From Ylistrum balloti (lineage: Eukaryota), in the NCBI RefSeq assembly GCF_031769215.1, contig NW_026782754.1, forward strand, positions 372,001 to 436,000: a stretch of DNA of 64,000 nt, written 5' to 3'. The position numbers and the translations under genes are program-made. The notes beneath the pieces were generated by a model. The model saw nothing but the letters and a program-made list of their open reading frames with translations, made no database searches and had not been told where the DNA came from. Positions 14,358 to 43,199 of the stretch are shown one piece after another. Position 1 is the stretch's first letter. The number at the start of each line of letters is the position of its first letter.

Positions 14358-14710
14358 TCTTCCATCTTAAAATTAACCTAATGATTTAGAAAAATAATGG
14401 CTATATAATCAAATTTACCCTAAACCTAGTATTACTTGCAGTGTATAATACTGTAAATGATTGTAAACGTTCATGTTACTTTCATTAATACAAATGTAAA
14501 TAATTGAAATTATTTGTAGTTCTTAGTGCAATGATTCACCATTTGAAATAAAGTTTATTATTGTCTACTTGACTTTCTGTAACTAAAATATAATTCAATG
14601 TTCGAGAACCTGCTACACATCTATTTTTCACAAGAATTAAACACATGAATACACCGACACGTGTTTGATGTTGTATTTTATGAGATGTTAATATTGTTCG
14701 AATATTCTGT

Positions 14711-17442
14711 TCAGTCCTCATAACATTTCGGTTTGATAATCGTTCTGCCACTGACACGACTCACATGTTGCTCGGGTACTGCAACAGATGGAGGTTGCCT
14801 AGCAACACCAGTCTCCTTAGCAACGTCAATGTCCTTAGCAACGACCGTTGGCATTAGGAATGTTTTTTGTTCATTCGACCTACACTGTAGTTCAGGATGT
14901 TTGGACTGCACAGAAGTAGGTTGTGCTCCTAGAATGTTCATATTTGCGTACGCGTTTGGTTGATAGTCAAACTTGTCATCACTGAAGTTTTCACGAGACT
15001 TCAGAATGTCTCTTCTGTTCCTCCCATAGCTTCGACCTTCACTTTTGATTATGCACGACCTTGGGTTGTCGTCCTTTCTGACACACTCTGCTGGTGTCCA
15101 GTTTTTTCCAGTATGTATTCTGACATATTCATCAGGAAGAATATCACGCATTCTTTTGGTTTCCTTATTGAACCATTTTTCCTGTGACCTCTGGTGTTTT
15201 CCTCCAGACGTGGACAAACAAATTTATTAGAATTGTCCCGAGGTTTTATAAGCGACTTCTTAATCGGAACAATTGTTGGTGTTTTACGTCCAATTTCCAC
15301 CGAAGAAAGACCAACACCTGAAATAGGTGTGTTTCGGATTTCTAACAATGCGATTTCTGGATCCGGGCTATCTTCCTTGCCTTTTTTGGTCAGCTTTTCT
15401 GCTGTTTGCACTATTCTTTCAGCAAATATATTGTTTTGAGGGTATCTTGGTGAAGATGTGACATGTTTAATATTGTATTCACTCATGAATGCTTGGAATT
15501 CTGCTGACGCGTGTTCGGTCAGTTCTCAGGATTTCCGGAATACCATAACGCGCGAAATGTAACTTCATATACTGAATCAATACCAAACTTGTCACATTCG
15601 GAATGTTGAATATTTAAAAATATTTTGAGTAATAATCAGCTGAGATCATAAACTTATCATCACCAAGATAAAATATATCACTCGCAAACTTCTGCCAGGG
15701 TCTGTCAAGAATTTCCTCCTGAATGAGTAGTTCCTCTTGCTGACACTTTCTATGCTTCCGACATATAAAACAATTTTCAACCTTACTTTTAATACATTTC
15801 GACATTCCAACCCAGAACAAACTAGATTAGGCAAGTTCTAAACACTTCATAAAACCTAGATGGCTGGCATGTACTTTGTTGATAATTTTACTTTGAAGCG
15901 ACAGTGATGTGACAATTCTGTCTCCTTCCATAAGTAGACCATTACACATGTTGACCTCATCCCTAATATTCCAATAGATATCGAGATTCCTTGCTATATC
16001 ACTCCTCTTATCTGGCCATTCAAGTATCACGTTTTGTTTCACCGCAGGTAATACACGATCATCGTCAACTTCCTGTATGAAGTCCGTACTTTTCCCACTC
16101 GATATACACACTAATTCGTGTACAGAAAATTCTGCGTTGCTGGGTTCATCCTTGAAAGGTGCAATGTAGAGCTCCTTGCCAGGAACATATCGAACACACA
16201 GATTATAATTCTGTATCTCATTCTTTGAATTCTCTGTGGTGCTTGTATGAGAGGCTTTTTGAACAAACTTTCGAGTGGCTTGTGATCTGTTTGAATGTTA
16301 ACCACATCTTTCCCATAGCTATACTGATGAAACTTCCCTGTTCCATAAACTATTGCTAACATTTCCTTTTCCATCTGCGTGTAATTTCTTTCCGTGTCTT
16401 TTGATGATCTCGAAGGAAAGGCTAAGGGTTTTCCTCTTTGCACGAGACACGCTCCTAGTCCAGTGGATGATGCATCTACGAACACATGTACCTCCTCATT
16501 CTGGTCATAATACTGAAGTACTGGTGTGTCCGATATGAGCTCCTTTAAACGTTGAAGTGCTCGTCTGTGTCTGTGCCTCCCAATGCCATGCTACCTTTTC
16601 CTTTAGAAGCTCAAGGAGTGGTGCATTCACTGTGGCTAGATCCGGAACAATTTTTTGTAGGTAACTGACCATGCCTAAAAGTCTTTGCAAACTTTTCACG
16701 TCATCGGGTTCTGGCATTGCCATGATTGCCTTGATTTTGTTCTTGTAAGGTTTCAGGCCATCCTTTCCAAATGTGTGACCTATATTCAACTTCATCTTGG
16801 CTGAGCATTTCTTTTCATTAAATCTGAGATTTACTATGTCTGCTTTCTCCAATACTTTTTCCAACCGTTCATTTAATTCCTGTTCGTCCTGTCCCCAAAT
16901 AAGTATATCGTCAACAATGACATCACAGTCTTGGATAGTCTCGAATATCTGTGTTGTAACTCTTTGAAAAACTTCACTAGCTGATTTGATCCTAAATGGT
17001 AATCTCTTAAACTTATATCGCCCAAATGGCGCATTAAATGCTGTCAACCAGGTACTTTCCTCGGCCAACTTTATGTGAAAGAACCCTTGCGATGCGTCAA
17101 GTTTTTTTGAATACTCTAGCATTATTTAACTTGGCTGCTACTTCCTCCACAGTTTTCATCGGGAAATGTTCTCTCTTTACCGCTTTGTTAAGATCCCCGA
17201 GATCTAAACACAATCGGACTGAACCATTTGACATTGTACGCAGCCCCTGTGTCTATTTTGAATGCAAACTTCTGATCATTTATTTTCACTTTTATGTGCC
17301 ATTCAGTTGCTTTCATAGACTTTTCTGTTCTGTTTACCATGCCAACAAACTGTGTATCACCGTAATCATCTTCATCTGTCTCGGCATCTAATGCATTCAT
17401 GAACACCCATTCTACACATTTTCGCGAAGGGATTGTTACCAT
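14711..17442 (-). pseudogene. pol: Gypsy pol remnant (protease, RT, RNase H, integrase), frameshifted
   Basis: FKIDTGA (protease, ORF 17188-17442); LDASQGF...PFGRYKFKRLPF...IVDDILIWG (RT); FVDASSTGLGACL...ERNYTQMEKEMLAI (RNase H); HASHLG...CFIC (integrase Zn finger); RPWQKFASDIF and TSSPRYPQNNIFAERIVQT (integrase core). Split across at least 7 ORFs. Confidence 0.95.
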
Positions 17443-17495
17443 GGCAATTTAGGCAAGATTTTCGATAAGCAGCACAATTTCTCGGAAGGTGTTTG

Positions 17496-19657: not shown

Positions 19658-20846
19658 TGTTAACCTAGCCGACTGTGGTACCACAGTAAGACCCATGTTT
19701 ACCTGGGCGACAGTGGTACCAAAGTAAGACCCCTGTTTACCTGGCCGACAGTGGTACCACAGTAAGACCCCTGTTTTCCTGGCCGACAGTGGTATCACAG
19801 TAAGACCCCTGTTTTCCTGGCCGACAGTGGTACGACAGTAATACCCCTGTTTACCTGGCCGACAGTGGAACGACAGTAAGACCCCTATTTACCTAGCTGA
19901 CAGTGGTACCACAGTAAGACCCTTGTTTTTTCCTGGCCGACAGTGGTACGACAGTAAGACCCCTATTTACCTAGCTGACAGTGGTACCACAGTAAGACCC
20001 TTGTTTACCTGGCCGAAAGTGGTACCACAGTAAGACCCCTGCTTTCCTGGCCGACAGTGGTACGACAGTAATACCCCTGTTAACCTGGCCGACAGTGGTA
20101 CGACAGTAAGACCCCTATTTACCTACCTGACTGTGGTACCACAGTGAGACCCCTGTTTACCTGACCGACAGTGGTACGACAGTAAGACCCCTGTTTACCT
20201 GGACGACAGTGGTACCACGGTAAGACCCTTGTTTACCTGGCCGAAAGTGGTACCACAGTAAGACCCCTGCTTTCCTGGCCGACAGTGGTACGACAGTAAT
20301 ACCCCTGTTAACCTGGCCGACAGTGGTACGACAGTAAGACCCCTATTTACCTACCTGACTGTGGTACCACTGTAAGACCCCTGTTTACCTGGCCGACAGT
20401 GGTACGACAGTAAGACCCATGTTTACCTGGACGACAGTGGTACCACAGTAAGACCCTTGTTTACCTGGCCGACAGTGGTACCACAGTAAGACCCTTGTTT
20501 ACCTGGGCGACAGTGGTACCACAGTAAGACCCCTGTTTACCTGGCCGACAGTGGCACCACAGTAAGACCCCTGTTTACCTGGCTGACAGTGATACCTCAG
20601 TAAGACCTCTGTTTACATGGCCGACAGTGGTACCACAGTAAGACCCCTGTTTACCTGGGCGACAGTGGTACCACAGTAAGACCCCTGTTTACCTGGGCGA
20701 CAGTGGTACCACAGTAAGACCCCTGTTTACCTGGCCGACAGTGGTACCACAGTAAGACCCCTGCTTTCCTGGCCGACAGTGGTACGAGAGTAAGACCCCT
20801 GCTTTCCTGGCCGACAGTGGTACGACAGTAATACCCCTGTTTACCT
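19658..20846. repeat. Tandem array of a 38-bp unit (GTTTACCTGGCCGACAGTGGTACCACAGTAAGACCCCT), about 31 copies; one orphan unit at 14165-14202
   Basis: Period measured as 38 (acagtaag at 20521 and 20559). The unit has a palindromic core around GGTACC. Confidence 0.97.
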
Positions 20847-22980: not shown

Positions 22981-23334
22981 NNNNNNNNNNNNNNNNNNNN
23001 NNNNNNNNNNNNNNNNNNNNNNNNNNNNNNNNNNNNNNNNNNNNNNNNNNNNNNNNNNNNNNNNNNNNNNNNNNNNNNNNNNNNNNNNNNNNNNNNNNNN
23101 NNNNNNNNNNNNNNNNNNNNNNNNNNNNNNNNNNNNNNNNNNNNNNNNNNNNNNNNNNNNNNNNNNNNNNNNNNNNNNNNNNNNNNNNNNNNNNNNNNNN
23201 NNNNNNNNNNNNNNNNNNNNNNNNNNNNNNNNNNNNNNNNNNNNNNNNNNNNNNNNNNNNNNNNNNNNNNNNNNNNNNNNNNNNNNNNNNNNNNNNNNNN
23301 NNNNNNNNNNNNNNNNNNNNNNNNNNNNNNNNNN
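22981..23334. other. Assembly gap (N run)
   Basis: 354 N. Confidence 1.
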
Positions 23335-23539
23335 GTACCACCCCTGAGTACACAACCACGAAGTGAGGTATCAAAATAAAGCGAGGTACTTTTTCCCGTT
23401 ACCTCGCTTTGCGCACCTCGTTATCTGCTTAGAAACTTTATTTTAAGTACGCACACGAAATTTTAGCTGGTACTTCACTACAACGCTAGTTTCTCACAAC
23501 TCTGTGTGTCGCAGATCCACCGCTGTCGATTAGCTATAC

Positions 23540-23670
23540 ATCCGCCAATGGCACACACTCGGTATTTCCCGCCAAAATAACTTTCGGAACTTTCCTCACC
23601 TAGCACATCATCGCGCCTTTTCCACAGATGCTGTATCAACCTCGTTTTGACGTGAAAGCGGCATGGCAAG
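23540..23670 (+). promoter_or_regulatory. Putative promoter / 5' UTR exon of the PWWP-BRCT gene (CCAAT, E2F-type TTTCCCGCCAAA, donor AAG|gtgagt)
   Basis: ccaat at ~23545, TTTCCCGC at 23565-23572, consensus 5' splice site at 23670/23671, about 830 bp upstream of the ATG-bearing exon. Confidence 0.5.
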
Positions 23671-24499
23671 GTGAGTGTAATGATTTTTTACCGTTTGCAC
23701 GGGGTATTTTTATTTATTTTCTTCACAGACATGACTGAAAAAAATCTGCTTCAAAACGTGCAGTAGGATATGTAAAATTTAGTCAGTTTGGACAGTATAT
23801 GTCTGCTCTTAATTACTGTTACTTCCGAAGACAGGATCATCATGAAGATTATGAAAACCGCATGATTCATTTCTTTGATATTGAATCGATGTTGCAGTTC
23901 GTACAGTATTGTAACAACCTACGCTTTGCGTACATGTGTATAAATAACTGCTGCTTATATGACGAGCAAATCGGTAATTACTTAGCGTCAATTTTGTTTT
24001 GTGTGCAACAAGAACGGGAAAGGTCCATCGAAGTTTAGTGTGTAGATCTATACAATAAGACAGCGTTCCCCATTGATTAGCTATAGGCCTACAGTACCCC
24101 TGAATGAGTGTAAAAAAACCCTGAAAACTTCGGAAAAAATGGCATATTGAAAGTTTAAAATACAAGTATAGAACTACACGTAGTTTCATTGACGAACTAT
24201 CATAAGTATCTACGTTATACATTGACAGTAGTGTTCATTCACATTGTACTAATTCAGTATACGTAGAGCTCTGAATCTGCAGAGATATGGTCTTTATTTT
24301 AGACGGCTCATCTTAGAATCAAAATAAGAACAAAACAAAATTAAAACTAAACTTTCTTTTAATTTCTCTGTATATCAAAAAAATATCTGCTAAGTAGAAT
24401 CCATCTAAGATGTACAGTACTAAGGCCTACTCAGTATATATGTAAATTATGTAATATATAATCCTTGGATCTTTTGTATGCATATTGAACTTGTTTTAG

Positions 24500-24566
24500 A
24501 TGACGAAGAGAAAGAGGAAGTACGTGGAAAGGGAGGAGCCCGTCTCAGTCAATCAGTATAAAATTG
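24500..24566 (+). CDS. Exon 1 (MTKRKRKYVEREEPVSVNQYKI-G), basic NLS-like
   Basis: ttttag|ATG ... ATTG|gtaaga; phase 1 joins GDVVF. Confidence 0.75.
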
Positions 24567-27500
24567 GTAAGAATGGATCAAATAAACTTGTACATCATAT
24601 GACATTCTGAAGTTTAGTCTTTAAGATACCATAATATTCATCGTAATATATTCACAGTGTGCTTATAAAATCACAAAAAAGTATAATGGATGTGTTTATT
24701 AAAACCAGTCACAGAAGAAATTTGTGAAATCTATTGTCAAATGACTCAAAAAATATGAAGAAGCTTTCATTCAAGTCAATTGTTTAAACAGTACCAAGTT
24801 CTTCATTTCCATCACATAACTTGTGTTTCTTGCAATGGATTTCAAGTTATCAACCAAAGTTGGTGTGTTAATTGCTAGTATATATATTATCAAGATCTTG
24901 CAAGAGACCATTATTGGGGAAAATCCCCATTTACCAGAGTTATAATAGGACTGGATTTTCTACAAACTTTGGTGTGTTGCTTCATATAATCAAGATCTTG
25001 GATGAGTTTAATATTGAGAAAAATCAGTCAAGTTGCTAAAGTTATGGGACTTGAAATCTGTTAAAAGTGGTTATTTCTGCGTAGGGCTGCCACAATGTAT
25101 TGGTATATATCTATATATTGCAATACACTTTTATCATATTGTATCGCAATGCAGATGCTTGAAAATCGATTCTTCACAATGCAGGTATTATGTGTATTTT
25201 GGACTAATTCCCCTTCATTATTGTCATTTCAAACAATAAAGTTATATCATTCTTTTGAACATGAATTAAAAGCGATGGTATTGCTTTCTTCTAGAATGCC
25301 CTATTTCATTGTTCCTCAATCAATATTCTATTCTTGCGAGCAAATGTGTATGACCTACAGTGACAAAAACACAGTGCAATACATTACACAATGTCAGTGT
25401 TTTTCCAGGGTATTTAGGGAATTTTTCAAAAATTGCAATTTTGGGATTTTATCCGTACCTGTGAAAACCTCTGAACTTTTTTTTCAAATTTTGAAATATT
25501 AATTTTCCATAAAATAAGAATTTTTGTTTCCACGGCAGACATTTTAAAATCTAAATCCGGATATTTTAGAATGAATGTTTTGTGTGTTGCGGTATATATA
25601 TAGCAATTCACAAACATCATACTTAAATGCAAATAACATTTGTATGTTTTTTCATATTATCAATAGTTTGCTTAGAGTTGTAGACTTTGTCTCATTTTTG
25701 GATAACATCATTGTTTTAATCGATGGATGTTACACACACAAAAAAAAATTCAATTATAGATGAGATACATTAAAAATGAATATTTCATATGTCTTCTCAT
25801 ATCATCGACAAAACATTAACCTTGAATTATAGGGAGCTTTAAAAGGAAATTGTTTTAAAGGCAAGCCTTTACTATTTTTTTTTCTTGTCAATCAAAACTC
25901 TTATCACCGGTATCCTTGTTCTGTTAAAATTTAAAAAGTAATACATGGTTTTTTTTTTTTCAGGTGATGTTGTCTTTGCAAACCTTGAAATTAAAGGCTA
26001 CCCTAAAAGCTGGCCAGGTGTCATCAAGACGCTACACACTGACACTGCAAGTGTATACTTCAAAAGTGATGATGATGAGTGAGTATAACTTGAACTGTAC
26101 TGCAGTGCTGAAAAGTTTTTGTCAGGCTGCCATATAATAAACATCTAATGATATGGCCTGATAAAATTCTAGGCCAAATAAAATCTGAAAAATTAGATGC
26201 AAGGTTTTCTATTTTGGTTTTGATTTAAAGAGTCTATGGAAATGTAACAGCACATGAAATTTAAACATATTTCACTGCCTCTGCTGAGGATTGAACCCTG
26301 GAACCTCTGGTTTACTAGACTGACGCTCAACTGATCGAGCTAAAGAGAAGTTCTCTCTAGCTGAGCGGTATATTGCAGCTAGTATACACCAGGGTTACAG
26401 AAGCAATAACATAAATTTAATGTAAGTTTGAGATACACAAATGTTATCCATCTTAAAGTGCTGTTTCCACTTAAGTACTGCATAACATCATTTGTTTTGC
26501 AATTCATTATACAGTCAATATACATATGAATTGTCATAAATATATATTTATACCATTCAGGTTTACATTGAATCGAAAGAAAATCAAACGTTTTCATCTG
26601 GATGAAACAGAGATTTCCAGAATTGCAAGTATGTAATTATTAGTGACAATGTAGTTTTAACTACTATAGACCATCAATTTATTGTTGGAATTGTGTTCGG
26701 AATTATTATTTTGTTATTAACAAATAACTGCTGGGTACACTTTTCCCCTTGCAATAATGATCATATTATCTACATGTACAGTACATGGAGTAAAATATTT
26801 CTGTATTTTAACTTTTTGATCATGTGATATTTTCAGCAATACAAGCCCTTTGGCAAAGCTTTGGCCCCTGAAGTACATGTGAAAAAAATGAAAATAATCG
26901 ATTATGGATTTTCACTAGCGATTCAGTAACATCATGCTAATAATTGATCGGTAACCAATTACAATCGAGAATCTGCCAAACTCTAATTTGAATACATCAT
27001 TTTGAGGAAGGTCAAGTAGAGGCTGCATCATATGATATTTAATTTTGTTAGGTAGCAAAAAACCAAAGTTACACTTAAATTTTACAGGAATTAAACAAAC
27101 CGAATAATATTTGCAATGACATAAATTTCACAAATGTTGTAGCTACTAGCTGTTGAATTGACATGAAATGTAATCCCTCGTTATTTATATGATAAAGTCA
27201 GGTCCCAACAACATGAACATGAGACCATACAGGATGACAAGATTAACTTGAAAGCTGATAAATTGGAATAAATTGAAGGACATTTATGTTATGCATAAGG
27301 AACATACTGGAGAAGAAACTATTTTGATCCAATCTATATTTTTTTCAGGTAATGTTAAAAACTTGGAAATACGCCATATACTCCTAGAAGATTATGAGTG
27401 GGCAAAAAAGATTTTCCTTGAGACGAGGCCTGAAAAAATCACAGAACTAGACACAGAACCTGGGCCATCACCAAAAGAGGACCACACAGAACCTGGGCCA

Positions 27501-28337
27501 TCACCAATACAGGACCACACAGAACCTGGGCCATCACCACAGAACCTGGGCCATCACCAATACAGGACCACACAGAACCTGGGCCATCACCAATACAGGA
27601 CCACACAGAACCTGGGCCATCAGCAATACAGGACCACACAGAACCTGGGCCATCAGCAATACAGGACCACACAGAACCTGGGCCATCACCAATACAGGAC
27701 CACACAGAACCTGGGCCATCACCAATACAGGACCACACAGAACCTGGGCCATCACCAATACAGGACCACACAGAACCTGGGCCATCACCAATACAGGACC
27801 ACACAGAACCTGGGCCATCACCAATACAGGACCACACAGAACCTGGGCCATCACCAATACAGGACCACACAGAACCTGGGCCATCACCAATACAGGACCA
27901 CACAGAACCTGGGCCATCACCAATACAGGACCACACAGAACCTGGGCCATCACCAATACAGGACCACACAGAACCTGGGCCATCACCAATACAGGACCAC
28001 ACAGAACCTCGGCCATCACCAATACAGGACCACACAGAACCTCGGCCTATGGTACTTTGTCCTAGTGGACTGAATCATGACCAAAAGGTATGAAATCACA
28101 TTAGTAGAGAGATAAAAACTATATTAAGGCCACCTGAAGTCCCATGTTTCGACAAATAGATATGGTCTTGATCGCTGGTCAAGGATTGCCTTCATACACT
28201 TGATTGAACTTTGGCCTTTAACCATGCATACTAATGAAATAATAACTGGATACTATATCTATATTCTGCAAATGTATCCTTGAAAGGAGATTTATAAAAC
28301 TAAACTCAGTAATATTACAAGATTTATGTGGTTTTTG

Positions 28338-28368
<31 letters not shown>

Positions 28369-31300
28369 ATGCCTTTTTTTTTCTAAGAATTTTGCTTTGT
28401 CCAGTGGTACTAAGACCTCCACCAATGGAATCTTATAATAAGTAGTTTGACTCAGTTTCCGTAGCCTGACTTGGTTCAGGTTAGTTGAATTGTCAGCTTG
28501 TGATGTTTTGGACACATTAAAAACATTCGAATGCACAAATTAGAGAAGAAATTAATTTCACATTATAACCTTTGACACCACAGCTAATGCTAGAATCAAG
28601 TAAGAAATGGTTTTACCTGAAATTTTTTTTTATCTTTAACTATCATACTATCAGTATATTCCAACATGGCTTTTTTTTTTTTTTTTTTCAGATGAATGTC
28701 CTTGGCATTTGCAGAGAGTACACGTTCAGATTCAGTAATACATTCAGCAACGAAGTGACACATGTAATAATCAAGACTGGTAGGTGTTATACTCACTGTA
28801 TGTAATGAGAAAAAAAATGCGAAGTCATTGCATTTCTTCTGTCAGAATGAAAGATTTTTTTAGCCCACCATCTGATAATAGGAGGGCTATGCAAATCACT
28901 TTTTCTGTGGTCTGGCGTGCATCCTTATACAATATTTGTTATCGCTATTTCTATGAAGGTTCCAACCTGAGGTCTAGTTTTGCATGTCGTGTTTTCGGAC
29001 TGACCTGACTTCAAGACAGGTGGCCATATTGGATTTTGAAAACATTGCTAAAATTACTTTAATAGAGCAGCAAAATACATAGCCCATTTTTTTTCCAAAT
29101 TATGCTGATAATAATGCAAGTGTAGATTAATGTGTTTGATTTGAAACTGCTGGCAAAAGGCAAGCTCAAATATCTTTTGGTTTTTATATCAAATGTATTA
29201 TAATTTTCTCTGCATGAAAACAAAATTTGTTTGTAATCATGATAAAATGTTTGTAGACACATAATTAGACAAGCCAGGGTGGTTTCAGGGAACTCAGAAT
29301 TTGTTACAGATACATGTACTGTTTACAGATTGAACATAAAACTTGCTTTTGCATTATTTGGTCTGATTTCATTGAATTCCAACTTTGGTTATTGTACTGT
29401 TGAAATGTCAGTAATTTCATTGCAGAACCTGTCGGAAGTCGTATTTGTGAACGTACCATGAAGTTTTTTAAAGGTATAGCAAAAGGGTGCTGGATCCTTG
29501 ACTACCAATGGATTGTAGAAAGTGTATCTGCGAGTCATCTTTTACCAGAGGTAACATAATTTATGCAATATACTAAAGCTCATCTGTTGTACATTCTGGA
29601 CCATAGGCTTGATATTGATATTGAGAAACATATATTAGTGTAAAGTGTATGTAGTTTTCTTAAAGCTGGCAGGGTCATTGAAGAGCTTGCCATATTTAGA
29701 TTGTGAAAGAAAGTTGGTGAACCCACAAAAAAATCAAATGTCCAAAGTTGGATTCCAACCATGAAATCCAGTGGTTGAGGGTTTTAGCAATAGGTATTAA
29801 TGTGTCCTAGGTGCTAACCACTCACCCGCCATGGAGGCATTTACCATTTATTTCAGATTTTGACATTGATATTTTAAACTATTTTATGAAGTATCAAAGA
29901 GTGAGTTTTCCCCCATTGTATGTTTCATATTTAATTTTTGAAAACCATGGAAATGAAAGCAAAAAAAACGTGACACTGTGACATGTTTCTAATTTTGAGT
30001 TGATGAAATAAAAATGTGTGGTATTTCATAGGAAGATTTCGAATTCATAGGAGATGAAGTCACTACTGAAAAGCACTTTGGGCCAGAAAAGTCGCGGTTG
30101 AGAGCGTCACCACTTCTGGAAGGATATGGAATATACTGCTGTGGAAGAGCAACTAATATTTCAAAAGGTAAATCTAACTTCAAAATTATCTGGTCATTTT
30201 AAGACTTAAAGTTTTAAGTGCATTAGATATCTAAAGTTAGAGCGAGGTACTTCCAGAAGAGAGTCTGACAAAATAATCTGACACTCTACTTACTCTGCTG
30301 GAAGTGACTGATGGCTTGATTGCCAGCTAGACTTATAAACTTCTAAATTACCGAAAATTGTTTGCTGGATAGTGAAGAAAATATTCTGAAGTCAATTCTA
30401 AATTATAATGTCTTTCAGATGATCTCGAGGAGCTGATAATTTGGTGTGGTGGGTCCTTAATAGATCCTGCAAAATCAAAAACCTCTAATATAAGAAAGCT
30501 TGCTGTGGCATGTGTAGACGAATCCTTATTCGATTATGACATAGCGAAAGGTGAGTATCAGCACCTGAATTTTGTACTTGCTGAATATGTAATTTACAGT
30601 AAATGTAATGTACTTTTGCCAAATTACCTGTCATTCAAATACATAGGCCATAAAATAAATGAAATCTGCTATTCATGCACTTTATGCTGTATAAGATGTT
30701 TTTTGTGTGTATTTAATTTTACCAAATTGCGTGACTGTTTAAATTGCAAAAATTAAAAATCATAAAATTTCCACAACAATGTTTATTTGTACTACTTATA
30801 GTTACATCCCTATTAGTTTCTTCACATAGATTGCTTATAAAGTTTATGTTGACACATGACTGCTCAATTATAATACCTGGGTTCCGTGTATTTCATTCAG
30901 TGTTACAAGTTTGACGTTTAAATACCAGAGCACTTTCTAATCTTGATTACTTCTCAGACAAATATATGTTAATCCATCGACTGGTCAGTTTGTTTTCATC
31001 TTATCTATACCTACATGTGTATCCAACAATATTCATAATTTAAAAAAGAAGGCTACCAAGGAAACCTCTATATTATTGGAACTTAGCATTGTTTTGTCTG
31101 TCTTAGAATTGAAAATGTTTACCAAATTTGCTAATTTCAGTTGGTTTTATTTTTTGCCTCGAGACCATTTTCATCTCTGCTCACTCTTTTAATGTATGTT
31201 TTTCTTCATAACGATCAAATTGCGAAAACGTCAATATGCCTAAATTGCAAACGCAAAACTAACCTGATATATAATGATATCAATTTTAATCTGACCTTAA

Positions 31301-33292
31301 TTAATCCCCCACCAGGAAGCGGAGGGGGGACTATAGTTTTGCATTGTCTTCCCGCAATCTTGTCCGGACTCTAACTCGTAATTAGTCGTATACTATTTGA
31401 TACTTTAACTTCAAACTTGGCACGTGGATGCACCATAGTGCGATAGTATGTCACATACCAAAATTAGTTCACTGTGACCTTGGCTTGACCTTTGACTTCC
31501 TTCAAAGTATGCCTGGTGGGGAGACCTTCATGGGTCACGACATTAATGTTCACATATCATTCTACAGACTTCCAGAGTCTACTATCCAAGTGGCAAAGCT
31601 TGGGAAATTTCTGCTAGCCTTGATTCTGGAGAAATCAGTAAATTTAGTTCCTGTACACTTGATGGCGTCACTTTAGATGAAAACGGTAAGCAGTTCAAAT
31701 TTTGCAGTATGTTAAGAGCACTGTACTGTGTTAGAGTACAAAAATAACATTAAATGATAGAAAATATACCCGAATCATAACATGTGAAAATTAGGTCCAT
31801 AGTTTTCATCATTGCAATTAAGACCGGAACCCCTCTATTATAAAAGGGAATCTATAAATTAGTGCCCCACTTTGGGGTGATTGAATCAAGTATGCATTAG
31901 ACGGCCGAAATTGGACGTAGATCTTGCTGTACCTGGAATGGACACAAACATAACATTATCTGTGAAATTCTAGTTTCTGTTGTAAATGACTTGCAGTTAT
32001 TGATTGGATGTAAAGCAAATGTTCATTAAAGGTAACTTGTACAATTATTTGATAAACTAGATATTGATGTAGAAGATGACCAGGAGGTTGAAGCAATGGG
32101 GGATTCCTCAGAATCTGATCTTGGAGACTCTGATGATGATGACCTGCATGTAGAGCAAGGTTTGTTTGACAGTTTGTTGTTCATTATCTATGATCGTATT
32201 TATGTCGTTGAATTGATAATTTGTTTACTATGACCTGCCTTATTCAACTTAGAGATGGGGCATAAAAATTAAATCAAGCAAGAATGATTTTTAGAGAGGG
32301 ATGAAAGTTACTTGCTTAACCTTAATACAGTAGTAAAAGTTCTTTGATCCAACTAATGCTATACAGTTGTGGCATGTAAATAAGAGTACCCCAACCATAC
32401 AAAACAAGACCTGCAAAGTGTGCCAAATATGGTCATTGTAACGTGTAATGTCGTACTGTGCGTTATGAACCAAAGTAATTAACCCTTTCCTCCTTTATTT
32501 TACTCATGCTTTAGTAAATATAAAGAGTAAATACTCACGTTGGGAAAAAGTTATCTGGAGCCCTGCTATACCCAAAACAGTAATTGCAAATGTTGTGTCT
32601 ACCAGCAATGAAATTAGCTTGGAAATGTTCAGAAAACTGATAATATATACTATGATAGATATCAGTACCTTATCAGAATTTAGTATACTACAAGTGTAAT
32701 ATATGAATTTCAATTTCAGTTACCCCACGGTCACATTCAGCTCTATCAAAGCCACAAGATTCTAAACGAAAAGGTATGTTAGATTCCTGGGATAGTCTTT
32801 GGTCAGTTTGAAGTTGGATGACCATTAAGATCATGATTATAGGGCCTCTTGGTGTATTAAATGAAAAGGATGTAGCATACATATTTTTATAAGCCTAAAG
32901 TGTTTGTTTTAGATTGACTGAAGAAAGCTGTTTACAGATGACTCCCTAAAAACTAAAATTATTTAGCTCTGTTATTTCAGTTACTTTTTACAGCATCTGT
33001 AACAAACTTTGAATTAAAATATTCATCTCAAATAGGGATATTGGTAATTAATAACCTTTATGTTTTCTTTTTAGGCCAGGTCATCTTGAACACAAAACAG
33101 CAGGCTTGCTTGAGGAAATTGTTTGGAGAAAATATTTTACTTCGCCGAGAACTGAAGATGAAAGAGTGTAAAGATGCTATTGCAGATAATGAATGTCTGA
33201 GAAGCTTGGAATGGAGAAAAGTAAAGAACACTGTGCACAATTGGATTATGAATGAAAAGAGGAAAACAAGAAAAATATCAACGTTCTCATAG
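24500..33292 (+). CDS. 13-exon gene: NLS-PWWP-(HTEPGPSPIQD)n-tandem BRCT (BRCA1-type)-acidic tract-C-terminal helical domain; ~665 aa if the exon-4 frameshift is repaired
   Basis: Exons 24500-24566, 25964-26078, 26561-26628, 27349-28087, 28692-28779, 29426-29550, 30032-30167, 30419-30550, 30958-30983, 31568-31685, 32061-32159, 32720-32773, 33075-33292. All have GT-AG flanks and matching phases; the only break is a 13-nt deletion at 27539/27540. Confidence 0.85.
25964..26078 (+). CDS. Exon 2, PWWP core (GDVVFANLEIKGYPKSWPGVIK...VYFKSDDD)
   Basis: tttcag|...GA|gtgagt; fits the PWWP pattern GDxVxA-x-KGYPxWP...VxF. Confidence 0.85.
26276..26382 (-). mobile_element. tRNA-derived (Thr-AGT-like) SINE/pseudo-tRNA in intron 2
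   Basis: Minus strand tctttagctcgatcagttgagcgtcagtctagtaaaccagaggttccagggttcaatcctcagcagaggca: A/B-box-like with a ctAGTaa loop, but stems are imperfect. Confidence 0.6.
26561..26628 (+). CDS. Exon 3, PWWP beta4-5 (E-FTLNRKKIKRFHLDETEISRIA)
   Basis: cattcag|...GCAA|gtatgt; phase 2 to 1. Confidence 0.8.
27349..28087 (+). CDS. Exon 4: PWWP helix, 33-bp coding repeats, BRCT1 start (RPMVLCPSGLNHDQK); frameshifted internally
   Basis: tttttcag|GT AAT ... CAA AAG|gtatga. Length 739 is out of phase; adding back the missing 13 nt restores it. Confidence 0.8.
27451..28047. repeat. 33-bp coding minisatellite (ACACAGAACCTGGGCCATCACCAATACAGGACC), about 18 copies
   Basis: 11-aa periodicity HTEPGPSPIQD / TTQNLGHHQYR; the third unit lacks ATACAGGACCACA. 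Confidence 0.97.
28692..28779 (+). CDS. Exon 5, BRCT1 (MNVLGICREYTFRFSNTFSNEVTHVIIKT)
   Basis: ttttcag|...ACTG|gtaggt; THV motif of BRCT beta3. Confidence 0.88.
28857..29120 (+). mobile_element. HINE-like element fragment in intron 5
   Basis: T-run then TTAGCCCACCATC...GGAGGGCTATGCAAATC 5' hairpin; body resembles the other HINE copies. Confidence 0.5.
29426..29550 (+). CDS. Exon 6, BRCT1 (CERTMKFFKGIAKGCWILDYQWIVES)
   Basis: Closely parallels BRCA1 [26 protein letters not shown]; cattgcag|...GAG|gtaaca. Confidence 0.92.
30032..30167 (+). CDS. Exon 7, BRCT linker and BRCT2 start (EDFEFIGD...HFGPEKSR...YCCGRATNISK)
   Basis: Parallels BRCA1 HDFEVRGD...HQGPKRAR...ICCYGPFTNMP; ttcatag|...AAAG|gtaaat. 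Confidence 0.9.
30419..30550 (+). CDS. Exon 8, BRCT2 (DDLEELIIWCGGSLID...)
   Basis: Parallels BRCA1 DQLEWMVQLCGASVV; tttcag|...AAAG|gtgagt. Confidence 0.88.
30958..30983 (+). CDS. Predicted 26-nt micro-exon 9 (D-KYMLIHRL)
   Basis: cttgattacttctcag|...CTG|gtcagt; the best candidate found that converts phase 1 to phase 0 without a stop. Confidence 0.55.
31303..31550 (+). mobile_element. Short HINE/DINE-like non-autonomous element in intron 9
   Basis: ttaatcccccaccagg...ggagggggactatag 5' end; cctggtggggaga near the 3' end is an inverted match; body has aaacttggcac / tgaccttg motifs. Confidence 0.6.
31568..31685 (+). CDS. Exon 10, BRCT2 end (TSRVYYPSGKAWEISASLDSGEISKFSSCTL...)
   Basis: ttctacag|...AACG|gtaagc; phase 0 to 1. 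Confidence 0.7.
32061..32159 (+). CDS. Exon 11, acidic tract (DIDVEDDQEVEAMGDSSESDLGDSDDDDLHVEQ)
   Basis: aactag|...CAAG|gtttgt; phase 1 to 1. Confidence 0.8.
32720..32773 (+). CDS. Exon 12 (VTPRSHSALSKPQDSKRK)
   Basis: atttcag|...AAAG|gtatgt; phase 1 to 1. Confidence 0.75.
33075..33292 (+). CDS. Terminal exon 13, helical domain (…LRKLFGENILLRRELKMKECKDAI…LEWRKVKNTVHNWIMNEKRK…)
   Basis: ttctttttag|GC CAG ... TAG; AATAAA at ~33437. Confidence 0.85.
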
Positions 33293-36373: not shown

Positions 36374-36621
36374 TGGAGTGTCATTATGAAGATCGTACAA
36401 AAGACACTAAGACAGCTGCACCGTTTAATGCCTAATCTTTATTCACTGTATTTGCAAAGGGCATGCCCTTGTGCATTCCAAGCATTACATATGATGGAAG
36501 GTGACAATGGTACATACAATAAGACTTATAACATGTGGTAATTTTTCAATACACCAAATTAAAATCAATGACGTCAACTCCTGGAAAAACTCAAATAGTT
36601 TAATATGTAGAATCAGATATA

Positions 36622-36850
36622 TACCTCACTTGGCTGGTTCAGTGTTGTTGACAAAATGTCGCTAGTTAGGTACTTTTTTATGAACCTCACATGGCTGGTT
36701 CAGTGTTGACAAAATGTCGCTAAAGTGAGGTAGTTTTTATGTACCTCACTTGACTGGTTCAGTGTTGCCACATCGTGTGTGTTGACAAAATATCGCTAAA
36801 GTGAGGTAGTGTTTATGTACCTCACTTGGCTGGTTCAGTGTTGCCACACT
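36622..36850. repeat. 76-bp minisatellite with AAGTGAGGTA-N9-TACCTCACTT hairpin (~3.5 units); inverted copy at ~54730-54965
   Basis: gctaaag recurs at 36719 and 36795. Confidence 0.85.
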
Positions 36851-37539
36851 GTGTGTTGGAACCACGCATACAGATTAACATCGTGCACATAAAAGAACGT
36901 AAATAAATTGATAAAAACCATATATTATATCATTGTGTATCATGAGAAAGGTAACGTATATTGAACGTATGTAAAACATATCCACTACACCAGAAACCAT
37001 TAGCTTCAAAATCTCCCCATATTTCAGCTTTATTTTATTGCTTCGTAGCTGGTATTTTAAACATGGATACCTTTCGATAGGTTTTGAATTTTAAGTGAAT
37101 CAGCGGCGTGAACGCTAATGACGCTACACCCACAGAGACGATTTCATGAGACCAATATGAGAAAAACACTTAAGGGACGACGATGGGCGAGAGTCTCTTT
37201 CTAAAGGGGGCATTTACAACGTCACTATGTCCAAATTTGACAACATATTTAAAGGAGTTATTTAAATATGCAAATTGGATTTTATCCGATATTTCCGGTC
37301 TACGCCACATCAGATACATATTATAAAAAAGTAATTAACAACGGCTTGAAAGGTTAGTTTTTTTTAATTTACGAGTGATTGGAACATAAATTACTACAGA
37401 TTTACTTATTACCTTCTCATTTTCCTTTAAACATTTCCATTCTTATTTAATTATTGTGTGTGTGTGTGTGTGGGTTTTTTTTTTTCAAAATGAGCGCTGT
37501 TATTCTATTATCCCTTTTTGCATGTTTCGTCACAATCCA

Positions 37540-37740
37540 TTGAATAGAAAGAAAGTTATTGATGAATATGAATAATGTTTGGTGCTTAATTGCGATATAG
37601 GGTTTGATCCCGTATCACTATGGATAGCAGCATATCTCTTGAGTTCATTACGTGTATTTAGTTTGTCTTTCCACCTTATATAATATAATTCATATAAAAA
37701 ACTATTGATGAAAATGTTCAACACATTATCGATGGTACGA
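37540..37740 (-). mobile_element. LINE (CR1/L2-like) 3' ORF2 relic; diverged direct copy at ~38880-39105; mirrors at ~52760-52990 and ~63415-63640
   Basis: FINSFLYELYYIRWKDKLNTRNELKRY resembles the W..L...KL..Y region following LINE RT. Confidence 0.45.
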
Positions 37741-39108
37741 ATAAGTTAAAGACTTAGTCATTAATGAACGAGTCTATATTAAATTTAACCTTTATGTTAT
37801 ATAAATTAGGCATGAATCCTGTGAGAATAACTGATAAACTGCCATACATAAATTGGCATAAACAAATTATAGACTTGGATATATAATTATAAGTTTTCCA
37901 TGTACACTCTACTTAAACGCTAATTTCCGCATCTCCACCTCTATCCCGATATAAAATGTCCTTAGACACTAAACAATCACTGATAAGGAGGAAGTTGTCG
38001 GGAGACCAAGACAACGCCTACATGCGTATCTTTGTGTACTTCCTAATTCTCCACAGCTTTTTGTACATACGAGTTCCGAAGTTAACATTCATACAGCACA
38101 CTTCAGTATGTAGCTTTTTTAACAATCTTAAAACATTTGATTTGGTTCAATCAATTAGTGGTGAGCACCGATACTAAGATATTAACTAAAGTGTCTCCTT
38201 CCTTTCACGAAAGTATCTTTTACTTCTAAAATTTATCCAGCATATGTTTCTGTGTTGTTATTAGTATTATATCAGAGCCAATTCTAGGCCGGTGCAAAGG
38301 GGTGAAATATCTCATTGATAGAAATGTTATTTTATATTGGATTATCAAATATACTACAGAGTTGTATAAAAGCTATATATATGCATGCTACGTATCGTAT
38401 TCACAAATAAAAATCTTACAGTTATCATCAAAATGCGGTTGACATACGGGACTTCAAAGTCAATCAACATGATGGTACCACGCTATATCATATTTCGTTT
38501 ACCAACAGTTCGCCGGAGATTTCGTTTTTCAAAACAGTTTTGAATTGATCCTGATTTATATGTAAACATAATTTTGTATTTGATAGTCAGGTAACCGTAT
38601 TATACCACTACATTAAAAGAATTATCTTTCCTTCATATTATGTTTTTTACATACATATGTATACGTTTATAGGTTTAATCAAATCATACTCTACATCTCA
38701 TACACCATTACATTGATATTTACAGCCATGTATAGCATCTGTGTTTCTAATTCGATATCAGTGAAATATACATGTAAACGACCACCAAGTAAAAAGTCTT
38801 CTATGGTCTTCAAACCTCAGATATGAAAACTGTGCATTTACAACACTATCCGTGATTTGTCAGTCTAGCATAAATTGAACATAGTATCCTTACCTGCTTT
38901 CTCACATAGTTTACAGGATACGGAATATTTGAATAATTCAACTAGATTCTAAACATGTTGTTAAGGAATTTGTTTGGTGCCTAATTGCTCAAAATTTCAG
39001 CTTATCTCTTGAGTTCATTACTTGTATCTAGTTTGTCTTTTCATCTTATGTAAAATAATTTATGTAAAAAGTCATTGATGAAACTTTCCAACATATTGTC
39101 GGTGTTGT

Positions 39109-39196
39109 TTCAGGGGTGCAGAGAGCAAAAGTGATAGTAACCTCTGGAGAATCGAGGATGGGGTTACGATCACTTTTGCTCTATGTACCCCTGGAA
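39109..39196. other. Long hairpin (34/35-nt arms, 19-nt loop); mirror at 63322-63409
   Basis: ttcaggggtgcagagagcaaaagtgatagtaacc ... ggttacgatcacttttgctctatgtacccctggaa. Confidence 0.85.
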
Positions 39197-39689
39197 CAGT
39201 TCATGGCAAAATCGAAGACTCCATGTGCGACACATTGTGGATAAGACGAGAAGACTAGTTTTATCCTTTGGTGTAGAAGTTGGTTGTGATCCGTGCCCTA
39301 AGAATCTTCAAAAGAGCGTATCAGTCTGGAATCGGTCCATTTTTTCTACACAAACCCGCTTTACATCAATCAAATTACTTCGCGTGTGCCTGCAATTTTG
39401 GCATGAAGTATTCCAGGGATGCAGAAAGGGGAAGTGATCGTAGCCCCTGGAGTATCGAGGATGTCTTACTCAGTGATCCATTCTCTCGTTTTGATCATGG
39501 TAAACACATCACACAGAAAGAGATAGTTATGAAAGATTGATAACAATCGATGAATGTAGTAATGGTTTTGATAATATCAAAAATGGGGAGAATATGGTAC
39601 AAGGTAGGTTTAATAGTAAAATTATGTAATTCCGGAAAAAAATAATTGTATGATAATGAATTAATCATGATTATAATAACGGAGCACTG

Positions 39690-40150
39690 TCAGAATTTCA
39701 AAACTACGGAATTGTAAATTCATGCCAAAAGGATTCAGAGACAGGCGGTGAATTACTAACTTGAGGCCATTAACCTTACTCAATCCTGACTACAAAATAG
39801 AATGTACGGCAATAGCTAACTGTACTGAAAGAGTACTACCATCTGTTGTAAGTAATACACGAAAAGGATTCACGAAAGACCGACTTATTGCAGGAAATGT
39901 AAACTTATTGTATGATAGCATTTCGAGGGGAAATATTGTTATTATTTGTAGATTAGGAAATGATTTTAATTCGATAGAGTGGAGTTATATTCATAGACCT
40001 TTACTGTCTTGAGTATTGATGACCCATTGATAAAATGGATACATGTTTCATATTTAGTGTAAAAAGTAGAATACATATTCTTGGTCGATATGGTTCTTCT
40101 AGTTCTTTGTCATACATTTAATATACAAAAACACCAACTGATATGGTTTG
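39690..40150 (+). pseudogene. L1/Tx1-clade reverse transcriptase relic; mirror at ~62368-62828 (-)
   Basis: RPLTLLNPDYKI...VLPSVV...KGF...FNSIEWSY...KWI matches the L1/Tx1 RT motifs NWRPITLLNxDYKI / QxGF / FDSVEW. Confidence 0.8.
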
Positions 40151-40354
40151 GTTTAAAAAATATTGGCTTCTATGTTACACCAAACGAAAAACAAAGGAAA
40201 TTTTGTTTTGTGTAGGATTTGGTTGTGAACCTATGTTGAACATCTATTAATATTGACCCAGTGGTGGCCTGGAAAGTACGTTTCACCTCATGGAAACATG
40301 ACAGCTCTGTCGAAAAAATATGTAGAACTAGGATTGGATAACTTGAATTGGAAC

Positions 40355-40800
40355 AGTTTCAAAACAATCGGTGTCTCTCCAGTTAAGACCGATGTCTCTC
40401 TAGCTAAAACCGAAAACTTTTCATTTAAAACCAGTGTCTCGTCAGTTAAAACTGCAAACTTTCCACATAAAACCGAAGCCTTTCCATTTCAAACCAAGAT
40501 ATCTCCTGTCAAAACTGAAGACTTTTCATTTTTAACCGAGATATCTCCAGTTTAAACCGAAAACTTTCCATTTTCTCTTGTTACAATCGGGGTCTCTCAA
40601 AATGGATTATTACTGTCAAACGCGGCATATCTTCTGTTAAAGCTGGCGTCTTTCTTACATAACCTGTGGTCTCTGAAGTTAAAACCGCCTTCTAAACTTT
40701 GAAAATAGTGTCTCTCAAGTTAATACCAGAGTTGTCCTATTAACACAGGAATCTCCCAAACTGGATTCTCACCAGTCAAAACCATGAGAAAAAGTTAAAA
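40355..40800. repeat. Degenerate ~21-bp minisatellite (AAAACCGGAGTCTCTCCAGTT-like); mirror at ~61720-62160
   Basis: 7-aa periodic xxxVKTx pattern in ORF 40253..40555. Confidence 0.65.
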
Positions 40801-41299
40801 CAGAAAATTCTTTCCATTTACATTTACCAACATATCTCTCAGTTTTGCCCTGTATCCGGATCAACATTCAAAGGTCTTCACGTATCACATTATGGAAAAC
40901 AATCTGCTTGGTGACACCAGGCCAAAAAATATCGATGGCAAGTTCTCCTATTTCTTGATTTGCATTTGAAAATTTCGCATGTTTAATTTTTCATTGATTA
41001 CGTGTAATGGTTTAAAGGGGGTTCACTGAGCAAGAAAACCACCTCGGGCAGGAAGTATTAAGAAGGTGTTGGTCACTAATTCTTTTAACCGCATGGTATA
41101 TCTCAGTACCAAAATGGCCAAAAGTGTTGACATTAGACTTGAAGTATGCTGATAATTGCTAAAAAATTTCAAACGACTTCTTCTTAATACGCAGATGTCC
41201 CAAGTAGCTGACATTGGGCATGTAGCACACTGGAAAGAGTAACCTTCTTTTGTAGGTTTTGTTTTTGTTTTATTCAAAGGATAAACTTGACCGACTCTT

Positions 41300-42520
41300 G
41301 GGGTCACAAGGGTCGAATGGGTTCAAATATGGTAATTACTTCTCAGTAACCAAAGGAAAAAGGTCCAGGCTGCTTATCTTGGTGGTATAATTGAATGAAG
41401 TTTATTCAAATGATTGAACTTTAAACACTTTTGAATTAACAAAGATCAAATGTTGTGAGAACTTCTTTCAACAAGTAATATATCCTGTGTTATGGTAAAT
41501 TTGGTATGGTAAATATCCATCTAGTCTTCCTTGGCCAAATAATTTAGGCCTGTATCATTAGCATACGGAAATTTAAAATTGGTACATTTTCAACATAAAA
41601 ACCATTTTAATATTAATTCTCATTCTTGCTGCAAGAATTTCAGCTGGCAGTAGAAAATGTAGGGAGCGATTGGAATTTCTAATTAGTGATTCAATTATTT
41701 ATGAAAATAAACAAAACTAGACAGATCAAAATATTTATAAATACCTGTATTCATAGTAACTACTGTATGCACATGCTAAAAACAACCTACAGCACCATAC
41801 AAACTGTAATCAAGGGAGGCCACTCCGGTTAGACTTGCCTATTAACTAAGCTTGACAGTTTGGAACACTTTAACACTTTTGGCCGAGATCGGAGTTTCGT
41901 TGAACCTCCAATTTAATACGTTTTGGATTTAGTGCATATGTATATTATCAGTCGTGCTACTTTTCCATCAAAGGAAACATGAGCGATTAAGGTAATCTCG
42001 TACACAAAAAATGCTCAGAATCATTAAACAACCAAAACCCACTTGATTTATCAAGGGACTGGAAATACTACATATATTGCACTGTAATAATATAGGACCA
42101 GGGTAACTCTTGTTATGGCAATGTACCATTTCAGTGACGCGCAATTTTAGTAAGATATGAAAGTTTATCAATTCGTGTAGACTAGCAATATACTGTTTGC
42201 TGTCGTTAACAGAATAAACCTTTATAATCACAGACTTCACACTGGTTTTAAGTTAACCCATGATCTCATAACAAAAACGATGTTTGATATCAATGAGTAT
42301 TCATTAATCCTTTTCTTACCACTTGGCATTTCTAAATATTAAAAAGGCTTAGCATCATAACCACTAACTCACAAACTAGCGGGGCGGTAAAATATCTTTA
42401 TGTATTCCAGTAGTATGACAGCCTAGAAAAGGCACAGGTGTCCTTCTTACGATATCAGCTGATGGTATCGAAATGTTTTTATTAATGAATTACTAGAGGT
42501 TAGATTGTGGTGAGCAAAGT
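41300..42520 (-). pseudogene. Highly decayed LINE (CR1/L2-like) RT relic; mirror at ~60000-61220 (+)
   Basis: FYRPASL...KPF followed by KTSVKSVII...ASLHELINFHILLKL resembles YRPISL...KLFE / ST...LD..KAFD...LL.KL; many stops. Confidence 0.5.
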
Positions 42521-43199
42521 AATTTATTATCATGGGATGTAAGACAGGATAACATCATGGCCCAAATTGATATTTATTCATCATTATATCGTATGAATTC
42601 TAACGCACCTTACAAAATATTTAGTCAGATGAATTTCTTGTTTATATTAGAAACAACAGTATTTATTACTCTTGCTTCCCGTAAATGTGCACTGACAGTA
42701 ACGAACTTGTGGAGTGGAATTCAATAGAATCGGCATGATAAATTTATTTTATTTTAGCAGCTGTGTCTTCCATGTGCTTTGTGTTGTAATATTTATTAAA
42801 TATGATTCTATTATTGAAAAATAATTTGATTTTACACATCACTTACGTATGCAACAGAAAAACAAAAACAAATTTTGAATTTCACAGGAGTTCAAATGTA
42901 ACATACATAATGACTGTAGTCTATTTAAGGACAAACTCCAGATCATTACTTTCTATTTTTTATAATATCTAATGCATATAATATTGATGTGTTAGACTCG
43001 TTAGTATACATTGCCGTTCCTTTGTTATATCCATGGTACGGTAACTTGGAATTACCGGGATCAACGATAAACAGATGACGTTTACCCTTTCGAAGCACAC
43101 GGTCATGTTTTTTTTTTATTGTACTTTCGTTTCCTCATGCGTTGGCCTCATTTCATAGATCATGAATTATTAGAATGAAAAAAAGTCCTGTTAACTTGT

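Follow-up and report, generated by a model that had tools for sequence, protein, structure and literature searches.

A probable Crypton-like transposon remnant with PWWP, BRCT, and tyrosine recombinase coding sequences in the scallop Ylistrum balloti

We analyzed 64,000 nucleotides of the scallop Ylistrum balloti (NCBI RefSeq assembly GCF_031769215.1, contig NW_026782754.1, positions 372,001 to 436,000 of the forward strand), a stretch referred to here as the window. Its portion from ~23.3 to ~37.5 kb is very probably an old, nonautonomous remnant of a scallop Crypton-like DNA transposon, an element with a single intron-containing gene that encodes a protein combining a PWWP domain, a BRCT pair, and a tyrosine recombinase. 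An earlier sequence-only reading had described this locus as 13 phase-consistent exons of an unfamiliar chromatin reader. Between 24500 and 33292, we count 12 stop-free segments on the plus strand; the exons are present, with AG/GT borders and canonical splice sites, but the frame is broken within a repeat array. The features of the locus are listed below in window coordinates, where P0002 and P0106 stand for the Argopecten irradians proteins XP_069101758 and XP_069115957.

22981-23334, unstranded: N run covering the expected left end of the element
23335-23946, plus strand: 5' subterminal noncoding region, with GTGAGGTA at 23363 and a partly conserved inverted repeat
24500-24566, plus strand: exon 1, start codon and basic N terminus MTKRKRK
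25964-26078, plus strand: exon 2, PWWP core (GDVVFA, KGYPKSWP, VYFKSDDD), 67% identical to P0002 residues 20-56
26561-26628, plus strand: exon 2b, remainder of the PWWP barrel, FTLNRKKIKRFHLDE
27349-28087, plus strand: exon 3, PWWP helices, repeat array, then BRCT1 strand 1 (MVLCPSGL) in frame 2
27451-28047, plus strand: 33-nt coding minisatellite, ~18 TEPGPSPIQDH units, 99% matches
28692-28779, plus strand: exon 4, BRCT1
29426-29550, plus strand: exon 5, BRCT1 (CERTMKFF...W), with BRCA1 as top PDB match
30032-30167, plus strand: exon 6, inter-BRCT linker and start of BRCT2, matching BRCA1
30419-30550, plus strand: exon 7, middle of BRCT2, where homology to the head of intact relatives ends (P0106 residue 274)
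30565-31523, plus strand: deletion junction, ~1 kb without similarity to relatives
31524-31685, plus strand: remnant of the recombinase C terminus, FMGHDINVHISFY, with His and the nucleophile Tyr; exon segment 31576-31685
32061-32159, plus strand: exon of the aspartate/glutamate (D/E) tract, homologous to P0106 residues 1213-1241
32720-32773, plus strand: small exon, VTPRSHSALSKPQDSKRK, homologous to P0106 residues 1242-1260
33075-33292, plus strand: last exon, C-terminal basic helical domain and stop, 71% identical to P0106 residues 1260-1327 (E 7e-27)
36618-36858, plus strand: 3' subterminal satellite of 59- to 76-bp units carrying GTGAGGTA/TACCTCAC
37455-37472, plus strand: (TG)9, a possible right end by position only

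Exon 2b was found only through comparison with a homolog, and it is required for the exon phases to agree. Exons 1, 2, and 2b and the start of exon 3 then read GDVVFA..KGYPKSWP..VYFKSDDDEFTLNRKKIKRFHL..DYEWAKKIF, and both the 5' exons and the four 3' exons retain their phases. The ~18 SP-containing repeats described earlier are indeed there, as the TEPGPSP-type units of the 33-nt array in exon 3, an array not present in the Argopecten and Pecten relatives. The last exon has no match to any Pfam family. Intron 2 contains a very high-copy repeat (26253-26470), with a contig word depth of ~7170 compared with ~15 around it.

In an exhaustive protein search with exon 5, shorter scallop proteins (73 to 80% identity) ranked above most scallop BRCA1 orthologs, which are 2400 to 2570 residues long and 61 to 66% identical to the window in this exon. 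These shorter relatives include P0002 and the Pecten maximus protein LOC117319161 (P0003). The 90% cluster of P0002 has 11 members on several chromosomes, the longest of which is P0106, with 1330 residues. In P0106, a PWWP-like region (residues 20-84) and two BRCTs (105-310) precede acidic repeats, CxxC/H motifs, and a recombinase region with the motifs RRRGGEAERL, RGKKGRRVPV, TKLRKHIAT, and MGHDIDVHRSFY, followed by a D/E tract and a conserved 70-residue C-terminal tail. The intact gene, as read from these sequences, thus encodes in order a PWWP of the HDGF/LEDGF type, a BRCA1-derived BRCT pair, acidic repeats, zinc fingers, the recombinase, an acidic tract, and a helical tail. Near-perfect tandem peptide repeats occur in the linkers of several family members, after the SET domain in P0158 of P. 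maximus and as acidic units of 37 to 60 residues in P0106 and in the 1202-residue Pecten protein P0114, while those of the window linker are 11-residue units; linker repeat expansion seems to be a recurrent trait of this recombinase family.

Comparison at the DNA and protein levels shows how much of this gene the window copy has lost. Only residues 1-274, 1160-1212, and 1260-1327 of P0106 were matched, and residues 275-1159 (~885 codons) are deleted, so that the copy has lost the final helix of BRCT2, the acidic repeats and zinc fingers, and almost the entire recombinase. A single 2.8-kb exon encodes residues 278-1212 in A. irradians; of this exon, only ~160 nt at the 3' end survive in the window, and ~3.2 kb of the A. 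irradians unit is replaced by ~1 kb to which it has no relation. The segment 31576-31685 encodes a tyrosine recombinase tail, 93.75% identical to P0106 residues 1160-1191, but its frame is broken by a 1-nt deletion at ~31621 relative to the Argopecten and Pecten copies. Because of this deletion, two frames each looked half plausible there; frame f2 of 31576-31672 had been considered as a divergent BRCT2 helix, which we reject, since P0106 reveals the recombinase's native frame. An in-frame join from 30550 to 31576 would depend on an acceptor at 31576, inside the 2.8-kb exon of intact relatives, and on a donor at 30554 that is weak (TGA|GTATCA).

A further lesion lies upstream, where a partial unit of 20 nt at ~27518-27559 in the 33-nt array moves the reading frame from 0 to 2. 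The 3' end of exon 3 codes for MVLCPSGLNHDQK in frame 2, which must be the meaningful frame at that end because MVLCPSGLNHDQK is the first strand of BRCT1. Therefore, the frame opened by the ATG enters QNLGHHQYRTT repeats and stops at 28071-28073, and this copy yields at most a PWWP-only polypeptide ending in out-of-frame repeats. The alignments thus identify three lesions: the ~885-codon deletion, the frameshift in the array, and the 1-nt deletion in the recombinase tail. The locus is also covered by one public run (X1), DNA-like and from a second individual, which differs by ~1% substitutions, with exons 1, 2, and 2b free of indels. Read depth over exons 1 to 2b in this run about equals that over the introns, so the window copy is single at ≥95% identity in that individual.

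Since the 3' segments match the tail of P0106, what had been taken as the end of BRCT2, the D/E tract, and the basic helical C terminus belong to the gene of another domain: the tract and the helical C terminus are present, as had been described, but by homology they are the tail of the recombinase gene. The recombinase fold was examined on P0106 residues 820-1215, of which the window keeps only about the last 50. The AlphaFold2 model has two domains and a predicted local distance difference test score (pLDDT) of 86.8. Its first 16 Foldseek matches in the PDB are Xer, Cre, or XerD recombinases (XerA and XerH among the best) and the remainder are almost all tyrosine recombinases and type IB topoisomerases; in Swiss-Prot, the 30 top matches are without exception tyrosine recombinases, almost all XerC/XerD, with E values down to 8.7e-6. 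In an alignment of 62 sequences, R195, K243, R318, H344, and Y353 are invariant and at the expected spacing, with a nearly invariant Thr where most recombinases carry the His of H-x-x-R. The Pfam family Phage_integrase was matched by 8 of these 62 relatives (best E 7.5e-6), and Pfam scans of the element proteins found no reverse transcriptase or DDE families. By its modeled fold, the P0106 domain is a Xer/Cre-like tyrosine recombinase, whose catalytic set is reduced to the last His and Tyr in the window copy.

The surroundings of the intact genes argue for mobility. In A. irradians, four loci on three chromosomes (L001 to L004) share a unit of ~17.3 kb at 97 to 99% nucleotide identity. In all four copies, the left border is (TG)n followed by TTGGTTTACAATAC and the right border is GCTTGGTAAACGGGTA followed by (TG)n; the borders are identical to the nucleotide, the flanks are unrelated, and one copy sits in the span of an unrelated gene. 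Besides its one gene, each unit has a 5' region of 2.5 kb and, close to the 3' end, a 73-bp satellite; it has neither long terminal repeats nor terminal inverted repeats, its ends being direct (TG)n repeats. Cryptons in the broad sense are marked by a single tyrosine recombinase gene and by direct repeats at their ends, and they lack reverse transcriptase as well as inverted and long terminal repeats (PMC3212892). The common (TG)n ends and unrelated flanks of these nearly identical copies therefore point to a Crypton-like DNA transposon, and a transposon-borne chromatin module, the second option of the sequence-only reading, is what these ~17.3-kb recombinase-encoding units with precise ends bear out. 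The P. maximus element (L006), taken from the contig of P0003, has the order PWWP exon, BRCT exons, recombinase exon, tail exon, satellite, ~300 nt, and (TG)n, and carries a similar terminal motif.

The subterminal regions tie the window copy to these units. Homology to the A. irradians unit begins at the first base after the N run, ~25 to 30 nt inside the element, and the 5' subterminal region is 76% identical to positions 7559-7841 of L001 and 68% identical to positions 8040-8179. A candidate binding site is the 8-mer GTGAGGTA, which, like its complement, is confined to the 5' subterminal region and the satellite, both in the window and in Argopecten and Pecten; the Pecten locus has 30 copies. 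Two 12-bp arms, AAGTGAGGTAAC and GTTACCTCACTT, separated by a 25-nt spacer form an inverted repeat that is perfect in A. irradians (L001 7580-7700) and partly kept at window 23355-23420, its geometry resembling that of a recombinase binding site. A second satellite block of 73- to 76-bp units with GTGAGGTA lies on the minus strand at 54766-54967, beside an N run (54335-54485) and with no adjoining element gene; it possibly represents a second, truncated copy or else a satellite independent of any element.

The head of the protein combines two readers. For the PWWP, P0106 residues 1-108, 59 to 69% identical to window exons 2 and 2b, stood in for the window sequence in the fold test. The resulting AlphaFold model, of moderate confidence, has a five-stranded barrel with helices that superposes on solved PWWP domains, and its 50 best Foldseek matches in the PDB are all PWWP domains (BRPF1 with TM scores of 0.60 to 0.62 and a root mean square deviation of ~3 Å). 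PWWPs also dominate a phmmer search of the PDB with the relatives, in which JASPer is best (E 8.8e-4), followed by DNMT3B, HDGF, and LEDGF. By alignment, KGYP..WP and VYF line up with the JASPer motifs of the aromatic cage, and the window has KGYPKSWP and VYF. The PF00855 match of P0002 and P0106 spans profile positions 1-77 of 93. When the window exons were compared singly with Pfam, none matched PWWP and only exon 5 touched BRCT (E 0.0016). Language model look-alikes of the PWWP part are mostly PWWP clusters, which we take as a lead only, and a homolog search with this part gave no candidate of comparable length, longer kin being outside its scope. Thus, a PWWP with a Tyr/Trp/Phe cage, as originally proposed, holds by the fold modeled for the relatives and by sequence matches below threshold: the Pfam cutoff was missed, but the PDB phmmer and Foldseek lists favor PWWP.

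The BRCT pair is of BRCA1 descent. BRCA1 is the top PDB match of exon 5 (E 2.5e-8) and exon 6 (E 5e-6), and the relatives have two BRCTs in full (Pfam BRCT, 3e-14; BRCT_2, 3.5e-10). Where two BRCT repeats had been described in the window, there is a BRCA1-like BRCT1 and about three quarters of BRCT2; the second repeat is incomplete, matching P0106 no further than residue 274, and its last helix is gone, together with the conserved Trp and the Leu of the +3 pocket. In an alignment that took in snake and scallop BRCA1, the phosphate-binding Ser-Gly of strand 1 and Arg-Thr-x-Lys of helix 2 are kept (PSGL and CERTMKFF in the window). The four intron positions checked (after GL plus 5 residues, after HVI(V/I)KT, after LLPE, and before DDL) are all common to the window and P. 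maximus BRCA1 (L005), and these positions and phases, together with the one that closes window exon 7, presumably match introns of human BRCA1 as well. These shared positions indicate that the BRCT pair, introns included, was copied as genomic DNA from a mollusc BRCA1 gene.

Maximum-likelihood analysis places the BRCTs of the window, Argopecten, and Pecten elements in one clade (97/97) and those of scallop BRCA1 in another (100/100), both within an unresolved mollusc BRCA1 radiation; the element branches are about three times longer than those of scallop BRCA1 (0.28 to 0.42 versus 0.07 to 0.17). An oyster element, P0196, has BRCTs without PWWP and a very long branch. We rejected a true BRCA1 ortholog with an unseen upstream RING exon, given the length of scallop BRCA1 (2400 to 2570 residues) and its separate clade.

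Relatives of the module made of zinc fingers, recombinase, and tail number in the hundreds (E values below 1e-117) and come from bivalves, a gastropod, echinoderms, a nemertean, many fishes, and a frog; their N-terminal partners vary among BRCT, SET, FHA, HECT, and Ulp1. Predicted proteins with PWWP and BRCTs exist in Argopecten, and equivalent exons exist in Pecten DNA, all annotated as "uncharacterized"; other relatives are called "BRCA1 homolog" by NCBI. No paper describing these predicted scallop proteins was found, nor, in a literature search of incomplete coverage, any account of tyrosine recombinase elements bearing BRCT or PWWP. The combination had been thought to be uncharacterized in animals, which agrees with the literature searched, but it is not confined to this locus. 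The shortened architecture of the window was not found in any relative searched.

It had also been proposed that the locus encodes a lineage-specific host adaptor linking H3K36 methylation to phospho-signaling. Such a protein would now have to be a domesticated deletion derivative, with the frameshift being an assembly error or a length allele, and we consider this very improbable. All of the retained exons have canonical splice sites, the 5' exons and four 3' exons are in phase, the PWWP frame is open from the ATG, and the phosphate-binding Ser-Gly and Thr-x-Lys are retained; moreover, the second individual (X1) has the locus with ~1% of bases substituted and exons 1, 2, and 2b unbroken by indels. 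However, a functional product would require the repair of two independent frame breaks, or the use of the weak donor together with an intra-exonic acceptor, and would include a BRCT2 without its last helix, conserved Trp, and +3-pocket Leu. No relative with the shortened architecture was found, and the exon joins are predicted ones. Because of the frameshift, the truncated BRCT2, and 3' exons that come from the recombinase gene, the adaptor is not supported. It is very unlikely, too, that the intact relatives are a family of host genes whose recombinase domain was domesticated and which multiplied through segmental duplication instead of transposing themselves. The gene is long and intron rich, NCBI annotates the copies as ordinary genes, and the recombinase family is widespread in animals, with many different N-terminal domains, as are domesticated Crypton genes (PMC3212892). 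Yet segmental duplication would have to account for four copies on three chromosomes, 97 to 99% identical, with the same end nucleotides in (TG)n and unrelated flanks, one of them inside the span of an unrelated gene. The element ends also carry subterminal repeats sharing an 8-mer, and the catalytic residues are invariant, whereas domesticated DUF3504 genes lost theirs (PMC3212892).

Several points weigh against the transposon remnant that we favor. The left end of the window copy is masked by the N run and the right end is unrecognizable by sequence: local alignment of the A. irradians right terminus with window 36850-37600 gave the TG run only, no better than shuffles, and the right end is uncertain because the terminal motif of Argopecten and Pecten is not recognizable there. 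What speaks for mobility is the near identity of copies at unrelated loci and the ends that they share. The gene structures of the window locus and its relatives are predictions, that of P0106 being a computational model. Pfam finds no recombinase in P0106 itself, and DUF3504 (PF12012), the signature of classical animal Cryptons (PMC3212892), gave no match for P0106 at E values up to 5 and is not among the families listed for the 62 members at E values up to 1. For the PWWP, the PF00855 cutoff (25.6 bits) was not reached by either P0002 (15.7 bits, E 0.022) or P0106 (18.7 bits, E 0.0026), and the model was built on a four-row alignment (pLDDT 71.5). An assembly error or an allelic difference could explain the 20-nt unit, which was bridged by none of the contigs listed for the public run over window 24400-27650. 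Finally, a tether role for the PWWP and BRCT head is something that we infer.

Endogenous nimaviruses encode microsatellite-specific tyrosine recombinases (PMC9977147, PMC10871703). By parallel with these enzymes and with the mechanism proposed for Cryptons, the scallop recombinase may mobilize its element through site-specific recombination in which the (TG)n of the element crosses over with a genomic (TG)n, via a circular intermediate. The PWWP and BRCT head could provide the enzyme with a tether of its own, much as LEDGF does for HIV integrase or the chromodomain for chromoviral integrases, and would then direct it to chromatin methylated at H3K36 and to phosphoproteins with pSer-x-x-Phe in the damage or replication response. 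The window copy itself is capable of neither integration nor tethering.

For annotation, this locus is better treated as a degraded transposon copy than as a gene for a DNA damage adaptor, and the names given by NCBI to its relatives are misleading. In this family, a mobile element has clearly captured host readers of chromatin and repair signals, namely, a BRCA1 BRCT pair with its introns and a PWWP, whose fusion to a recombinase is unusual for a transposon. The recombinase core with SET, FHA, HECT, or Ulp1 heads in molluscs, echinoderms, and fishes appears to be a modular and apparently unstudied system. It is conceivable, albeit speculative, that scallops hold a currently or recently active lineage of a metazoan-wide, undescribed Crypton-like class whose interchangeable chromatin reader heads (PWWP and BRCA1 BRCTs in scallops; SET, FHA, HECT, Ulp1, or BRCT alone elsewhere) guide integration at (TG)n toward particular chromatin states or the DNA damage response. 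If so, this would be a transposon that took over part of its host's own repair machinery. Should the 17-kb copies of the bay scallop be active, they would provide an animal site-specific recombinase with a simple-repeat target and a natural experiment on how chromatin readers bias integration. The object of interest is the intact family in other scallops, the window copy being a relic.

The remainder of the window holds other features. A 232-codon open stretch with an aquaporin-like HFNPS motif (1866-2561, minus strand) is probably an exon of a host MIP family gene. The interval 5600-8750 is a long minisatellite of coding appearance, with several frames open on either strand, and a 38-bp tandem repeat (22 copies, 89% matches) spans 20002-20846. 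On the minus strand, 14700-17450 contains retrotransposon pol-like frames with reverse transcriptase, RNase H, and integrase-like motifs. Downstream of the element, a large inverted duplication places the same open stretches in opposite orientations at ~38000-44000 and ~58500-63400, as in the pairs 39141-39434 (plus) and 63084-63377 (minus) or 43657-43977 (minus) and 58545-58865 (plus).

Compared with known proteins, the BRCTs of the element most resemble the tandem BRCT of BRCA1 (PDB IDs 1L0B, 1JNX, and 1T15), the best sequence match of window exons 5 and 6, sharing the linker motif EDFE.xGD and the positions of Ser-Gly and Arg-Thr-x-Lys; their intron positions coincide with those of the scallop BRCA1 gene. 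Unlike BRCA1, the element protein has no RING and no long central region, and its BRCTs form a separate, faster-evolving clade, with BRCT2 truncated in the window copy. The PWWP has the same order of strands and helices as those of HDGF, LEDGF, and JASPer (PDB IDs 6KCO, 2M16, and 5XSL; BRPF1, 2X4Y), with Tyr, Trp, and Phe at the aromatic cage positions of the alignment. It differs from them by an extra residue inside the P-x-W-P motif (KGYPKSWP or KGYPDGWP) and by a score of 15.7 to 18.7 bits, under the Pfam gathering cutoff of 25.6, and its histone binding is predicted only.

The chromodomain of chromoviral integrases and the LEDGF-HIV integrase pair couple a methyl-lysine reader to an integrating enzyme, which is thought to bias the choice of insertion sites. 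In the scallop element, the reader is fused to a tyrosine recombinase instead of a DDE integrase and is joined by a phosphopeptide reader, the two presumably serving a comparable function. Nimavirus recombinases (PMC10871703), specific for microsatellite and telomere repeats, are likewise zinc-binding tyrosine recombinases of animals whose elements lie inside simple repeats, a likeness drawn from their published description; unlike the scallop element, they belong to giant viral genomes in crustaceans and target (TAACC)n.

Cryptons (Goodwin et al. 2003; Kojima and Jurka 2011, PMC3212892) differ from the scallop element in several respects. It has no sequence match to DUF3504 or CryptonA, is much larger (~17 kb), ends in (TG)n microsatellites instead of 4- to 6-bp repeats, and carries a zinc finger region, a conserved C-terminal domain, and an N-terminal PWWP and BRCT head, the last of which was not found reported for Cryptons in the literature searched. 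Nevertheless, as in the element described here, Cryptons have one intron-containing tyrosine recombinase gene and no reverse transcriptase, they lack terminal inverted and long terminal repeats, with direct repeats at their termini as the presumed crossover site, and they are known to give rise to internally deleted, nonautonomous derivatives.

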